Shown piece after piece: positions 46,643 to 53,696 of a DNA stretch of 64,000 nucleotides. The number at the start of each line of letters is the position of its first letter. Positions within the stretch are counted from its first letter, which is position 1. The translations under genes were made by a program, and so were the position numbers. The DNA lies in contig NW_002060945.1 of assembly GCF_000150275.1 (NCBI RefSeq), positions 7,569,684 through 7,633,683 of the forward strand. The letters run 5' to 3'. Below the pieces are notes generated by a model. That model ran no database searches, was not told the origin of the DNA, and was given only the letters and a program-made list of their open reading frames with translations. The DNA is from Trichoplax adhaerens (Eukaryota > Animalia > Placozoa).

Positions 46643-48123
46643 AGCAAATTTGCTGAGATCCTATTGTCAAGAAAGGTACATTAATAAAATTGGATAATGC
46701 TTAGGTTTATTGCTGCTACTCTGTCTCATCACGTTGTCCAATATTGGATTAGAAGACTTTTGATTACAGTACTAAAGATGGTCAAAATAGAGTGTGTGTG
46801 TGTGTAGCAGGCTATTGCAAATTTCAATCCACTAAATACACCTCGGGAATCTTGTGAGTGGGATAGATTGTGACATCTATCGTGTGCTCATGGTTTGGAC
46901 TAAACTAAAATGCGTCATCAAGGACTATCAACAAGGCAGCAGGTATCCTGTCAATTGATATTTCTCTCCTCTCAGTAGAAGAGGATCAACATGCATTGGA
47001 TCGCTATCCATGAAGGTGAGAACGTATGTTGTTATGCCTGGACATGATTGCAAAGGGACATATCTTCTATCACTTTCCATGCAGTACGTCGATACTTGTA
47101 TGGAAGAGTGTTGTAGGAAAATGGTGGCGCAAACATCTATCGAAAGGTAAAAATGACCAACTACGGTGATAACGTACGTGATGAGAATTCCATTGTGGAC
47201 GAATAGTCAATAGTACAGTAATTTCTTGCCCACATTCAGCGTGGTTAAGCTAAGTATGCATTTAATTGATGCTATCATGCCTATTCTTACATCATCTTCT
47301 CCTATTTCCATTGGATCGAGTTCGTGGTCATCCATGATGTTGTAGACCTTTGGTAGTCCAACCTAGAATAACATACGTCCATTTTGAAATGCTGAGTACT
47401 AGGATGCATCAATTGCTCTATTGCAGTGTCCATCCAGCCAACCTGGTTGAAATGGACAGTCATTATGATACTACCACTACTACTATAGACAATGTTGTAT
47501 CAAGAAATAGACATGAATTTGCCATTTTTCTATCTCCTTTATTTGCTATCTACTCGTCTCTATCCTATCCTTAAAGTCTATGCAATGATTGTATGGCTGC
47601 ATTAGCAATCGTCGAGCTCGCTGTGGAGAAAGAGTTAGCACGCTCGATCGACCTACCTGACTTTTCTTGTCGACGATCTAATATTCAACAAGCAATTGCA
47701 ATTAGAGCTGTAGCAGCAACAACAGTCAATAATGGAGCATAGAATGGAATAAATCCTACTTAGGATGGAGAGTTTTGATTCTGCAAATAAATTGCCTCTT
47801 GAAAATTGCAATTCCTTAACTCTGTCAACGACATGGAAAGGGAATAGAGAGCAATGTTTTCAACATCCCCGCTGGGTCTTTCTGTCGTAGCGTCATCGAC
47901 TTCCAACTCGCTGATGGATGGAGCACTCGACTGGATGTTGGTATGGACGCTCTAGGACAGACCGAGGTTACGGACTCGAACTGTGTGGAACAAAGTGGCC
48001 ATCGTCGTGTGATGGTTGATTGACGTTTGCAAGGGTAATGGATGAAACATTGCCAATACGAGTAGGGTATTGTATCAAGTTATTTGCATATCTTGTGGAG
48101 GACTCGATAAATTTCATGTTGGC

Positions 48124-48670
48124 ACAGTAGTCGGTAATTACAGTACAGTGTACAGTGTACAGTGCACAGCGTACTGCGTACTGTAGTAAGTATTATGGAC
48201 TGTACAGTAGAGTACAGTACTGTACAGTACAGTAGTAACTGTGATGACTTACTGTATTGTACAGTGTACTGTACAGTAATACAGAGTGTACAGTACACTG
48301 ATTGCCATGCTACGGTACGGTACGTCACGTCACAGCCAAAGCTTTAAACTGGGTACAGTAGTCGGTATTTACAGTACAGTGTACAGTGTACAGTGTACTG
48401 TAGTATACTGTAGTATTATGGACTGTACAGTACGTAGAGTACTGTACAACTGTACTGTACTGTAATAACTGTGATGACTTACAAGTACAGTACAGTACTG
48501 TACTGTACTGTACAATGTACTGTACAGTGTACAGTACATAGAGCGTCAGGCTTAGGGTTAGGATCCACCACACGAGCAGTGCATGACTTGATAGTACTGT
48601 ACTGTACAGTATAGTACTGTACAGTACAGTACTGTACACTGCTTGCCATGCTACGGTACGGTACGTCACG
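48124..48670. repeat. Duplicated TACAGTAC-rich unit (~48124-48330 and ~48357-48670) between PRKAG and the snoRNA host gene
   Basis: Both units start cagtagtcggta(a/t)ttacagtacagtgtacagtgtacagtg, contain gtattatggactgtacagta and aactgtgatgacttac, and end ttgccatgctacggtacggtacgtcacg. Confidence 0.85.
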
Positions 48671-48726
48671 GAACAGCAAAAGCTTTAAATATTGCAACCA
48701 GCCTCTTGGCAGTTCACTTCTCCGCG

Positions 48727-48782
48727 CACGTGGCTCTCTAATCAGTCTATCTTGTTGCGCTCCTCTTCGTTTCGTTTTTCCT
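48727..48782 (+). promoter_or_regulatory. E-box CACGTG followed by a 5'TOP/TCT-like pyrimidine tract; candidate host-gene start
   Basis: CACGTG at 48727-48732; tcctcttcgtttcgtttttcc at 48761-48781, about 80-100 nt before the first gtaagt donor (48860). Confidence 0.5.
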
Positions 48783-49084
48783 GGATTGAGGCAAATGTGG
48801 CAAAAAGAAAAAGAAAACGCCATGGTAGAGAAGAAATGGGCCTGTAGGACTAGCCAATGGTAAGTAGATTTCCTCGACAGTCAACCTAGTAGAAGCTGCA
48901 GAAGTAGACAGTAGGAGACGTCTTTTCCACCTTGAAAAAAGTCTTGAAATGCTGACCAGTCATGCCTCTCCTCGGAGGTCCATGACGCTTCAGTTTTTGT
49001 CTTTTTCATCGTCATGCTTGCAGCGTCATTCGTAGCGATCTCTGCTAGTGGAGCATGCTATCTGTACCATGTCATGTTCTCTTC

Positions 49085-49154
49085 TGATATGATGATGTTG
49101 TATGTGATTCCCCATCAGACTATGTTATGACGACATGCAACAAATTCTGATTCC
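49085..49154 (+). ncRNA. Candidate box C/D snoRNA, intron 1
   Basis: Box C ATGATGA 49089-49095, D' CAGA 49116-49119, C' ATGACGA ~49127-49133, box D CTGA 49147-49150. Terminal stem is weak. Confidence 0.55.
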
Positions 49155-49524
49155 ATCAATGCCTTGACCTTAAAAGGCAATATCCAAATAGCTTGCTTCC
49201 AGTCATGCTTCAATTAAATAGCAAATTATTTCTGTTCTTACCTAGGTAATGCTATCGTCATGATGGAGAAAGCTTTCGCTGCAGCGGTCCACCAAAGATG
49301 AAAGATAATGGTCTATGAGACAAGAGCTAAACGCAATTTTCCATGACAAAAAACGTGCCATGGCCTTGCAAGGGTGAATGATGGATGCATGCATCTTCCA
49401 ACTCTTTGCGTCGACCGACTACGTTATTAAAGTAGCGTCTTTGTCGGCTGTGATCTTAACATGCTTGGATAGGCAGTGTAAGTGTCAATACAGTAGCATG
49501 TAAAACTCGATAGTGCAACCGATT

Positions 49525-49619
49525 TTTGGGTAAATGATGACTATACCTTTTTTCCCCTTCTTATCGATATATGACGACGTTTTCACTTTAATTTTAAGCC
49601 AGTGACTACTGATCCCAAA
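49525..49619 (+). ncRNA. Box C/D snoRNA, intron 2 (target unassigned)
   Basis: Terminal stem TTTGGG/CCCAAA; box C ATGATGA 49534-49540; C' ATGACGA 49571-49577; box D CTGA 49609-49612. Confidence 0.75.
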
Positions 49620-49893
49620 TTATCCAATGATATTGAATCCTATTATTTGTTCACATTTCTGGTACTTGCTGATCAACTAAACTAGGTCATTTTATTACTA
49701 CCCGTACTCTTTAGGATCAGCCTTTCCACAAATAGTCATGCGTAAAGAAACATTGAAGCAAGTGAATTCCAACAGCTGTTGTGTTAGATGGTTACCATGA
49801 ATTGAGGTATGTAGAAAAGCACACCGTGACATAGATCATTTTAGTAATGCATCACGCCTTTTGATTGTACACTGTTCAGTACATTTCTGATGC

Positions 49894-49997
49894 AAATCGA
49901 TGATGAAGATTTGCCGAAATTCGCAGTTTCCAACCGAGGTTGGGTAGTTGCCAGCTACACAACCTGTGATGGCATATTCCTTGGATGTCTGAGATTT
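49894..49997 (+). ncRNA. SNORD14: U14 (SNORD14) box C/D snoRNA, intron 3
   Basis: Terminal stem AAATC/GATTT; box C ATGATGA 49900-49906; domain A ATTCGCAGTTTC; domain B TTCCTTGGATGT directly before box D CTGA (49989-49992). Both are the conserved 18S-complementary elements of U14. Confidence 0.92.
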
Positions 49998-51033
49998 GCT
50001 ACAACAGTGTACACGTAGACATACTGTATAGTGCCGTATTTACTAGCTTGCGATGATGCAGTTGCTCTTGGACTACTCTTGACAAATTTGAATACGTTAT
50101 TTCTGTATGTCATGTGCGTATCAATGTACTGTGTAGCTGGAGTTCGAAAATAGGTACTTGTTAGGCGTAGGTGATTAATATCTATATGCTTGGAATGTAT
50201 TCTATATTGCTATAGGCAGTGGTGAAAGCCGACATTGGAGGTACAAGACAATTCGTAATTACCAAGATCGTTTTTGGTACGTTACTGACATTTCTTGAGG
50301 CGTGATTACTGCAGACAGCCTGACAAATTGAATTGCACAGAGTAGGGTGGGGTGAAGGACCCATTCTGTCATTAATCAATACTAATTGTACCTATTAGTC
50401 AGTTTGTTGCCGTAAACTGTTTGTACAATGAATAAAATATTGATGCTATAAACAATAAATATGTACAAGCACGTCAATCAGAAATGCAATAAAGTTAGTT
50501 TGAAATCAATGAAACTCGTGTAGTACATTGCTGCTATTTCAAAGAACGAAACGTTCTACGACTGATTTTATGAACAACTAAAACGGATGTGTGCTCTGCA
50601 TGCGTGACTACTGGTCGTTTATGCACATCATGATAATCAGTGAGTAAAAACAGCACTAGAAGAAATTGTGTATTGAAATATGAATAAGCGTACTTTATTA
50701 CATGCTAATATTGGTAGATACCATAGTAATAAAATAAATATTACTGATTCTTACAAATTAATACGTACAAAAATGATTACATTATTACACAATGTACCGC
50801 AAATAATACAGGATTTAGTAGTGAAACGCTACATTTGCATTGCTAGGCATGCACTGCATGGACTAGAATGATATCAGTAAAAGTTCATTTACAGTCAATA
50901 TAATACGGCCATTTTCTCCGCATTATTACAAAGATTTTAGTAGGAGTCTTATGTCCAGTCCAGGACAATATAGAGTATAAGCAAGTCACTTTACAAAAAT
51001 GAGCTATGATACAATTTGAGATTTAATTCAAGT

Positions 51034-53696
51034 TTAATCTTGATGAGGCTTGTATAAATCTTCATACTGCAAAGGAAAAAAAGATGTTCATTAGCAATCT
51101 CGATAGCAGTTGGAAATTTTAGCATTTTAATCGTACGTATACATCAATGTCAACAGATAATCTTACCACAACAAGTTGTCTCCCAATATTTCCAATTGTA
51201 AGTCCACCTGAGAAATAAATCGACGGTAGCCAAGACTTGACAGATAACAAATCTGGCTCATTGTAACTGATAAAAGGCGAAAATTTACACTTCGTTAGCT
51301 TACTATAGAGCAACGCATTTTGCATGCTTTTAGCCAATGCTAGTAATAGTAAATGTTGATAGAGTGACAATTACCTAAAGACACCATTTGAGACTAAAAT
51401 TTGATTAAAGCCCGTAGCAACAACAGCCGATAGCATGGCCAAGAAAAGACCAGTTCGAGTGCGATCGTATAACCACCACAAACAAAGTGACATTGCCGAT
51501 ACCCAGAATGTTAGCTGAGCAGGTGTTGAAAAATTAAGTGTCTATATGGGAAAGAATCAACGAGCACATTAAAAATACACGTCCATTTGCGAGATTAACT
51601 TTAAGGTGTTGACATTCTTGTACAATAGAAATGAATTGCAAATCGACAGATGTGTAAAAACTACGATAACGGAAAAGGTGCACCGAGCAGTGTATTATAT
51701 TATTGTATTGATACAGGGTCATTGAGCAATATAGTTACTGTCAATATGCAGGCATCCAAATTTGTATATACTGTATAATGTACAGTATCATATTGTGAAT
51801 GTTTTTTGTCGCATATTCAATATACGCGTAGAGCGGTATCCACTGTGTCCTGACACTGTAATATGTGAGAAGAACACCAATCATGAAGTTTACATTAGTG
51901 TGCCTGTTGATTTGCTTGTGCTGTAACACCGTCAATTAGGGCATAACTGACTGAAACTTGCAGGTAAGACAAGTTACTTCTAGTTAACGTATAACATAAC
52001 ATTAGATGAAACTGTGTCGAAAGAATTTAGTTCAACAGCCATTTCGACCATATTCCGTAGATCACGAGAATATTTTAGTACAACTATTTCGACTATATTC
52101 CGTAGATCACGAGAATATTTTAGTACAACCATTTCGATTATATTCCGTAGATCAAGAGAATATTTTAGTAGAACTATTTCGACTATATTCCGTAGATCAC
52201 GAGAATATTTTAGTACAACCATTTCGACTATATTCCGTAGATCACGAGAATATTTTAGTACAACCATTTCGACTATATTCCGTAGATCACGAGAATATTT
52301 TAGTACAACCATTTCGACTATATTCCGTAGATCACGAGAATATTTTAGTACAACCATTTCGACTATATTCCGTAGATCACAAATATAGTTATTTTAGTAG
52401 AAGTTGATGCAAATTAGCGCAAGACCGCACTGCACTCACGTGATAGTGGGTGCGGACTTTGCGTCATAAAGGATTCACCTACGGTATTGCAGTATCAAAC
52501 AGTGTACTGTTCCGTACATTACCTACACTCCCATAGCGAGAGTTGAAAAGATCATTTAGAAGCGTAGATATACGCTACAATAGCATAATAACATGTAGTG
52601 GATCGCTTTAGTGTAAACTGCCCTTCCACGACGCTATTTAACCCTTCATTAATTCAACATTTTCATCGATTAGGTTGGGAACAGAGACTCAACTATTTGC
52701 GTCAAAACACAAAAACAATCGCAGTTTGTACTAGTCCATGAACACTACATAGCATTCTTGTGTAGTATAATAATGATCAAGCAATTGAATAAAACGTCTC
52801 TTCCATCATGATGACGTGTATATTGATCATGGATCAATCAAAATCGAAATGTTGTAGTACAACTTGAGATGATGATGTTGACTAATAACATCATCATTCT
52901 GATCGCATAACTTGAGATGATGATGTTGACTAATAACATCATTCTGATCGTCTAACTGGAGATGATGATGCTGACTAATGACATCATCATTTCTGATCGT
53001 ATAACTTGAGACGTTGATGTTGACTAATATCATCATCATTTTGATCGTAAAACTTGAAATGATGATGTTGACTCATGACATCATTATTCTGATTGTATTA
53101 CTTGAGATGATGATGCGGACTAACAACATCATTATTCTGATCGTGAAATTACAATCCTGTTGATATTCAACAATAACATGCTAGTAAAACACTGTAATAA
53201 TACTAAGCGATTAGTCGTGGCAAAGGTTTTCAAACTTGTGTCTTACTACTAGCAGAAGAAGTACATGAATGACTGTATGTCGAAAAAAAGCATCAGAAGT
53301 AAAGAGGACACTAGGAAAGAGAACGGCATAACCTATACGGCAGATTCAACTTACAGCGGCAGCGTGATTAATTCCTATCCATAAAGCAGTACAACGCATT
53401 ATACTTGTCCACTCGTTCTTGATTTTAGGAGATTCACCTAAATGATGATCTGCACAAGGAAATGCCAATCCAATCAATACAGCACCAGTACCATATGATG
53501 GCAGCATCCACCAAGTAGACATTGATAGGCCAAACAAAGCGAGGCCTGACAGGACGTCTCGCGAAAAAGCGGCTACATTACGTTGAACTTGTAAGACATT
53601 CAGTACAAGAGCGAATATGACACCAATGAAAAACAAGGCAATGACTATTCGAAGCCAAGGAACTAGTGCCGAACGAAGTGATTTGACGTTGGTCAT
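51034..53696 (-). CDS. INSIG: Insulin-induced gene protein INSIG; four exons (~53696-53355, 51541-51375, ~51266-51167, ~51066-51034)
   Basis: LFFIGVIFALVLNVLQVQR, WWMLPSYGTGAVLIGLAFPCAD, KIKNEWTSIMRC...GINHAAA|TLNF, LWWLYDRTRTG, VKSWLPSIYFSGGLTIGNIGRQL, C-terminal KPHQD* (KxHxx-type ER retrieval signal). Confidence 0.95.
52022..52399. repeat. 45-bp minisatellite, about 8 copies, in INSIG intron 1
   Basis: Unit ccatttcgactatattccgtagatcacgagaatattttagtacaa, nearly perfect, with no spacers. Confidence 0.95.
52861..53144. repeat. 45-49-bp hairpin-containing tandem repeat, six copies, in INSIG intron 1
   Basis: Unit aacttgagatgatgatgttgactaataacatcatcattctgatcg with the internal inverted repeat atgatgatgtt/aacatcatcat. 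Confidence 0.9.

Follow-up and report, generated by a model that had tools for sequence, protein, structure and literature searches.

A 64,000-nucleotide (nt) stretch of the Trichoplax adhaerens genome (assembly GCF_000150275.1, contig NW_002060945.1, positions 7,569,684 to 7,633,683 of the forward strand; here referred to as the window, with position 1 as its first letter) very probably contains a dedicated non-coding host gene for small nucleolar RNAs (snoRNAs), with a SNORD12-type box C/D snoRNA and a U14 snoRNA in successive introns. An earlier note, made from the sequence alone, had proposed a host gene of the GAS5/SNHG type at this place, and that proposal has held: the locus gives rise to a spliced plus-strand RNA without a credible open reading frame (ORF), and this RNA carries U14 and at least one further C/D snoRNA, one per intron. 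Positions 48400-50900 of the window were read directly, and the evidence for the gene comes from RNA contigs, Rfam and Pfam searches, pairing with ribosomal RNA (rRNA), and comparison with U14 loci recovered from metagenomes.

Structure and coding capacity of the host transcript

To describe the transcript, we aligned assembled contigs from four public runs (X1, X3, X5, and X8), which belong to four studies, to positions 48650-51900. Three plus-strand GT..AG joints were found. The first, 48859|49246, was present in X8, with an offset variant in X5 that adjoins strain differences at 49234 and 49241; the second, 49477|49715, was present in X3, X5, and X8; and the third, 49806|50216, was present in X3 and X8 (contig joint from 49804 to 50214, cut shifted by +2). 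X1 contigs were continuous across the locus and showed no joints, as DNA would, and the joined forms are therefore RNA products and not genomic deletions. The neighbouring INSIG gene provided a built-in control, since its joints are of the CT..AC form that corresponds to minus-strand splicing. The spliced plus-strand transcript predicted by the earlier note is thus seen in contigs of three studies but not in the DNA-like X1. Two of its predicted junctions, 48860-49245 and 49478-49714, are exact in the RNA contigs, while the third, 49807-50046, was wrong at its 3' side, the acceptor in X3 and X8 being at 50215 instead.

We considered whether the snoRNAs could be made from promoters of their own, with the spliced transcript being incidental to them. 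The contig data show no mature snoRNA ends, and unspliced contigs, present at low depth, span the host introns, as independent transcripts might. Unspliced contigs are, however, also expected from a precursor. Moreover, all three C/D elements described below lie inside the skipped parts of confirmed introns, on the transcript strand and one per intron, and the spliced exon contigs of the host match those of the INSIG mRNA in depth. We regard independent transcription of the snoRNAs as extremely improbable.

The exons show no ORF-based coding signal. Stops occur in all three frames of exons 2, 3, and 4, in agreement with what the earlier note had reported for an exon-like segment. When ORF lengths in the spliced exon model were counted by script, the longest ORF beginning with ATG was 33 amino acids (aa) long (49378-49477, continuing into exon 3), and comparison of the exon ORFs with Pfam yielded no match. 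A longer ORF of 71 aa arises only with a transcription start upstream of 48648. If either of these ORFs were translated, the spliced RNA would double as a micropeptide messenger and the host would not be strictly non-coding. Both ORFs are present in the sequence, and the sole indel seen inside the 33-aa ORF, a deletion at 49424 in three runs, is 3 nt long and in frame. For a single indel, however, chance alone gives an in-frame length one time in three, and neither ORF matches Pfam. In addition, the 33-aa ORF is preceded by several short upstream ATG-ORFs, and the 71-aa ORF requires a start upstream of X8 coverage and overlaps a duplicated low-complexity block. We consider a micropeptide messenger highly unlikely.

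The 5' end of the host gene is less sharply defined than its introns. The earlier note had placed the start near 48761, but X8 contigs begin at ~48716 and an X5 contig passes 48650, running upstream into the duplicated, GTAC-rich block. The CACGTG E-box (48728-48733) and the pyrimidine-rich run (48760-48781) on which the earlier placement relied are both present; the E-box lies downstream of the X8 contig start. A second pyrimidine run, CTTCTCC at 48717-48723, coincides with the X8 contig start and is a possible pyrimidine-rich start. The TATA-like sequence TTTAAATA upstream of it, to which we would assign a promoter role from its sequence and position, sits in the second copy of the duplicated block (48629-48689, 92% identical to 48288-48348, at a spacing of 341 nt). 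The duplicated part includes the TATA-like AAGCTTTAAA, and two copies of the promoter may exist. Positions 48080-48690 contain short, GTAC-rich, partly palindromic repeats. Matches to microRNA families at 48420-48650 (mir-5014, mir-2804, and others) were rejected as artefacts of these palindromic repeats, as they were far under the cut-offs and fell on both strands.

At the 3' end, the poly(A) signals reported by the earlier note were found as AATAAA at 50431, 50454, and 50488. The X3 contig of exon 4 stops at 50472, ~13 nt past the AATAAA at 50454-59, and the X8 contig extends to 50656, where it abuts the 3' end of INSIG. INSIG itself lies on the minus strand, convergent with the host, at 50645-51541 and beyond (Pfam INSIG on two exon ORFs; CT..AC joints 51066|51167 and 51266|51375). 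The X8 contigs of the two genes meet at 50645-50656, and their 3' ends may overlap.

Table 1. Features of the snoRNA host locus, in window positions
Feature	Position	Strand	Evidence and parts
TATA-like TTTAAATA	48684-48691	+	~30 nt upstream of X8 contig start; putative promoter element
Exon 1	48717-48859	+	Contigs; 5' end uncertain; donor GTAAGT at 48860
Intron 1	48860-49245	+	386 nt, GT..AG; X8 joint 48858/9 to 49245/6
Candidate C/D-like element	49085-49155	+	C ATGATGA 49089-95; D'-like CAGA 49116-19; C'-like ATGACGA 49126-32; D CTGA 49147-50
Exon 2	49246-49477	+	232 nt; contig joints; stops in every frame
Intron 2	49478-49714	+	237 nt, GT..AG; X3, X5, X8
SNORD12/snR190/snR107-type box C/D snoRNA	49524-49620	+	RF00581, 37.4 bits, E 1.6e-5, full model length (region scan); C box 49534-40; ASE1 CTTTTTTCCCC 49547-57; C' ATGACGA; GCCAG core 49598-602; D box 49609-12
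Exon 3	49715-49806	+	92 nt; contig joints; stops in every frame
Intron 3	49807-50215	+	409 nt, GT..AG; X3, X8
U14 (SNORD14)	49895-49996	+	RF00016, 54.7 bits, E 2.7e-10, full model length (region scan); C box ATGATGA 49900-06; domain A ATTCGCAGTTTC 49919-30; Y-domain hairpins; domain B TTCCTTGGATGT 49977-88; D box CTGA 49989-92
Exon 4	50216-50472	+	X3 contig 50214-50472; X8 contig 50214-50656; stops in every frame

The intronic snoRNAs and their predicted targets

A permissive Rfam scan of positions 48400-50700 confirmed the U14 named by the earlier note, with a full-length match to RF00016 that is far beyond chance (Table 1). When the genome was searched (105.6 Mb, 1414 contigs), this was the sole significant RF00016 match (E 3e-9), the next one scoring 24.5 bits. 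Besides its C and D boxes, the element has a terminal stem of 7 bp (GCAAATC/GATTTGC, -9.6 kcal/mol) and a fold z-score of -1.84. Guide pairing was assessed against 18S and 28S rRNA from the same genome, and the position numbers used here are those of these rRNA copies. Domain A (ATTCGCAGTTTC) pairs with 18S 82-93 and domain B (TTCCTTGGATGT), directly upstream of box D, pairs with 18S 411-422, each by 12 of 12 Watson-Crick pairs. C415 in 18S ACATCCAAGG is paired with the nucleotide at the fifth position before box D; the homologues of C415 are yeast Cm414, Arabidopsis Cm416, and human Cm462, which are methylation targets of U14 (PMC3511168). Considering that an ungapped target score does not tell true guides from shuffled guides, only such homology of the target site carries weight here.

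In all four runs, including the DNA-like X1, an extra A follows position 49936, in the first hairpin of the U14 Y-domain. With this A the hairpin becomes a perfect 6-bp stem with a 3-nt loop, and the window probably lacks one base at this point, through an assembly error or a strain difference. The other listed strain differences flank all three C/D elements, and none falls inside them. The earlier note had described the elements as lying about 55-100 nt upstream of the acceptor. This applies to two of them, which end ~94 nt upstream, but not to U14, which ends 219 nt (and not ~50 nt) upstream of the acceptor at 50215.

The second C/D snoRNA proposed by the earlier note, in the middle intron, was likewise recovered as a full-length match far beyond chance, in this case to RF00581 (Table 1), an Rfam family that merges SNORD12 and SNORD106. 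It is the best RF00581 match in the genome (E 1.7e-4; the next one scores 28 bits and has a different guide), and its terminal stem comprises 6 bp (-7.4 kcal/mol). The guide element ASE1, CTTTTTTCCCC, pairs with 28S 2498-2508 (GGGGAAAGAAG) over 11 bp, one of them G-U, and with CTTA taken as box D', the third G of the 28S site is paired with the fifth position, as in the Rfam consensus. This target is the root of 28S helix 73, and its G2500 is homologous to human Gm3878, the modification at the root of helix 73 that is directed by human SNORD12 (PMC11971394). In an alignment with 10 environmental homologues, the ASE1 block, a TCGA motif, the C' box, GCCAG, and box D are conserved. GCCAG, the core of ASE2 (the element before box D), is invariant in 11 of 11 aligned sequences, where it stands ~5-10 nt before CTGA, and is also found in the Rfam consensus. 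The GC-rich hairpin of fungal-type sequences is missing from the snoRNA in the window.

The element in intron 1 is a weaker candidate. Its C and D boxes are perfect and its C' and D' boxes plausible, but the terminal stem is weak (4 bp, offset, -1.8 kcal/mol) and one guide region pairs with the other. It is single copy in the genome. No Rfam family matched it in the permissive scan, and a search for targets in 18S, 28S, the spacers with 5.8S, U2, U5, and U6 found none above shuffled guides. In this AT-rich sequence, 10 of the 27 RTGATGA sites on the plus strand of the window have a CTGA 35-110 nt downstream, and the boxes of the candidate are therefore not beyond chance. Two features, its placement 94 nt before the acceptor, which it shares with the SNORD12-type snoRNA, and the fact that no strain differences fall inside it, are suggestive without reaching significance. 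Thus, the claim of one C/D structure in each intron stands as far as RTGATGA...CTGA arrangements occur in all three, but the one in intron 1 does not exceed chance expectation, and we propose only tentatively that this intron yields a third, orphan C/D RNA. The candidate was also examined as a SNORD12 paralogue, as it shares UUCCCCAUCAGA with the human SNORD12 consensus; this was rejected because it forms just 6 bp at the 28S site. A fourth snoRNA at 50047-50215 was rejected as well, as the region has no proper boxes and varies between strains. Elsewhere in the window, two tandem arrays of 45-nt units were noted, at 52035-52380 (7.7 copies, 96% identity) and at 52861-52999 (2.9 copies, 88% identity); in the latter, GATGATGA...CTGA motifs mimic C/D boxes.

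Several points count against the interpretation of this locus as a non-coding host of two genuine snoRNAs. The RNA evidence consists of assembled contigs only, which carry no strand, cap, poly(A) tail, or mature snoRNA ends; X5 and X8 disagree on the start of the transcript; and the deletion in the 33-aa ORF keeps the frame. A partner for ASE2 of the SNORD12-type snoRNA was sought in 28S, and none was better than those of shuffled sequences. Finally, both snoRNAs score below the curated gathering scores of their families (54.7 bits against 64 for RF00016 and 37.4 bits against 43 for RF00581), and for this reason an Rfam scan of the whole window at gathering thresholds returned zero matches. 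Environmental U14 genes from 10 loci, however, score 49-66 bits on the same model, with 26 of 28 undoubted copies below 64 (49-63.7). A score of 54.7 is therefore ordinary for U14, and the gathering cut-off is strict and not diagnostic.

In the host gene that we favor, RNA polymerase II, as we infer, would transcribe ~1.75 kb of the plus strand, from ~48716 or earlier to ~50472, and removal of the three GT-AG introns, as seen in the contigs, leaves a product of ~0.7 kb without a credible ORF. By analogy with the established pathway for intronic snoRNAs, the C/D core proteins would bind the box motifs and exonucleases would trim the excised introns to mature snoRNAs. Intron 3 would supply the genome's only U14, in which domain A on 18S 82-93 would serve 18S processing and domain B is predicted to guide methylation at C415. 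The SNORD12-type snoRNA may methylate 28S G2500 or, like yeast snR190, may act as a folding chaperone of pre-60S.

Linkage of SNORD12-type and U14 genes

A distance of 275 nt separates the SNORD12-type gene from U14 downstream of it, the two lying in consecutive introns of a single non-coding transcript. Schizosaccharomyces pombe snR107, Saccharomyces cerevisiae snR190, and human SNORD12, SNORD12B, and SNORD12C are orthologues, and the genes for snR107 and snR190 are both directly upstream of U14 (PMC11971394). Of these, snR107 resides within an intron of the long non-coding RNA (lncRNA) mamRNA, and the human SNORD12 copies reside in introns of the lncRNA ZFAS1, without U14 (PMC11971394). The locus in the window joins the yeast linkage to the animal mode of hosting.

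To place this linkage in a wider sample, we used 120 environmental U14 loci, which had been retrieved from metagenome contigs by a pattern of domain A followed by domain B, and scanned them for a C box followed by an ASE1-like guide (at most two substitutions) and GCCAR...CTGA. An snR190/SNORD12-like element was found 305-1046 nt upstream of U14, on the U14 strand, in 23 of the 120 loci, and on the opposite strand in 0. Most of the 23 linked loci look fungal. Two of the 23 (L071 and L095) are multi-snoRNA clusters on one strand, and their ASE1-D'-C' block is almost identical to that of the window.

The simplest reading of this distribution is that the order SNORD12-type then U14 goes back to the ancestor that animals and fungi share. 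A stronger form of this reading is that production of both snoRNAs from one spliced non-coding transcript is itself the ancestral animal and fungal arrangement, which Placozoa and fission yeast would have retained over roughly a billion years; the unit would then have become an endonuclease-processed dicistron in budding yeast and would have been broken up in bilaterians. We consider this stronger form a serious possibility but would stop short of calling it probable. Three points speak against an inherited linkage. The largest animal-like group of environmental U14 genes (82 copies at 44 loci, 28 with at least 1.1 kb upstream) showed no SNORD12-like partner, so some animals would have lost the linkage; in humans, U14 and SNORD12 are unlinked; and the linkage could have arisen twice.

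The same observations favor an adjacency that is coincidental or convergent, in which the two snoRNAs entered one host independently and the host gene is nonetheless real. SnoRNAs are mobile and switch hosts (PMC3511168 and PMC2655684), which together with the unlinked human genes and the 44 partnerless animal-like loci makes independent entry plausible. However, the order, strand, and few-hundred-nt spacing in the window agree with both yeasts, and the 23 environmental loci agree as well, with no case of the opposite orientation. Both snoRNAs are also single copy in this genome, and a chance pairing among its many snoRNAs is therefore unlikely. Taken together, we view coincidence or convergence as a credible explanation, albeit a rather doubtful one.

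Some of the environmental loci have a content of their own. L071 (1-6289; Ga0100405_1075054) and L095 (1-9150; OFHQ01000317.1) are metagenome contigs without long ORFs that contain SNORD15-like, snoR1-like, SNORD52 or SNORD52-like, and SNORD12-like genes and three U14 copies. They also contain a C/D RNA whose guide is directed to 28S ACAGGGATAACTG, and L071 has a second SNORD12 (42.9 bits). L045, L081, and related animal-like loci have two to four tandem U14 copies and SNORD24, without a SNORD12-type neighbour.

Relation to known host genes and significance

Genes that host snoRNAs without coding for protein are well known, and in the one described here the part worth following is the SNORD12-type/U14 neighbourhood. 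Like vertebrate genes of the GAS5/SNHG1 (UHG) type, whose exons are poorly conserved and whose snoRNAs are better conserved than these exons, it has short, ORF-less exons and one C/D snoRNA per intron. The snoRNA cargo here is different. A 5' terminal oligopyrimidine (5'TOP) start and sensitivity to nonsense-mediated decay are typical of the GAS5/SNHG1-type genes. Human ZFAS1, which hosts SNORD12, SNORD12B, and SNORD12C, is similar in being a non-coding spliced host with one snoRNA per intron and the same ASE1 guide (Gm3878), but it carries no U14. In humans, two protein-coding genes, RPS13 and HSPA8, carry the U14 copies in their introns.

The mamRNA-snR107/U14 locus of S. pombe resembles the one in the window in having a snoRNA of the SNORD12/snR190 type in an lncRNA intron, with U14 next downstream on the same strand, and in a guide that pairs with the same helix-73 G of large-subunit rRNA (PMC11971394). 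In the window, by contrast, U14 too lies within an intron, the one that follows in the same spliced RNA, and the SNORD12-type snoRNA, with its 97 nt, is shorter and has no GC-rich internal hairpin of the kind seen in fungal-type sequences. The link of the S. pombe locus to the meiotic regulators Mmi1 and Mei2 does not carry over to the window by inference. The SNR190-U14 dicistron of S. cerevisiae combines the same two families, likewise with the SNORD12-type gene first, in a single transcription unit, but the pair is released by cleavage with the Rnt1 endonuclease and not by splicing (PMC8536666). In addition, S. cerevisiae snR190 is non-methylating, and its box B, 15 nt long, is complementary to domain I of 25S, whereas a comparable second complementarity was not found here in 28S.

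A 2009 survey of Trichoplax non-coding RNAs has been called the only systematic one in basal metazoans (PMC3412847). The C/D snoRNAs that it lists are U3, U18, U36, U76, and U106, and U14 is not among them (PMC2655684). Because Rfam merges the SNORD12 and SNORD106 families, the "U106" of that survey could be the SNORD12-type gene described here. Another element that may be this "U106" is the second-best SNORD12/106 match in the genome (L014, ~1515-1605; C1413:4451769-4451860; 28 bits); this C/D-like RNA has a long terminal stem, and its guide is a different one.

U14 is needed for 18S rRNA production wherever this has been tested, and in Trichoplax the genome's only U14 would depend on a gene that is invisible to protein-based annotation. 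If production from one spliced transcript is indeed ancestral, it would point to selection for co-producing a snoRNA for small-subunit processing and one for large-subunit folding or methylation, and the published suggestion that the splicing route newly evolved in fission yeast would be reversed. The locus unites the snR190/snR107-U14 synteny of yeasts with the hosting of SNORD12 in lncRNA introns known from humans, two features that are separate in the literature, and the origin of the arrangement thereby becomes testable in other early-branching animals.

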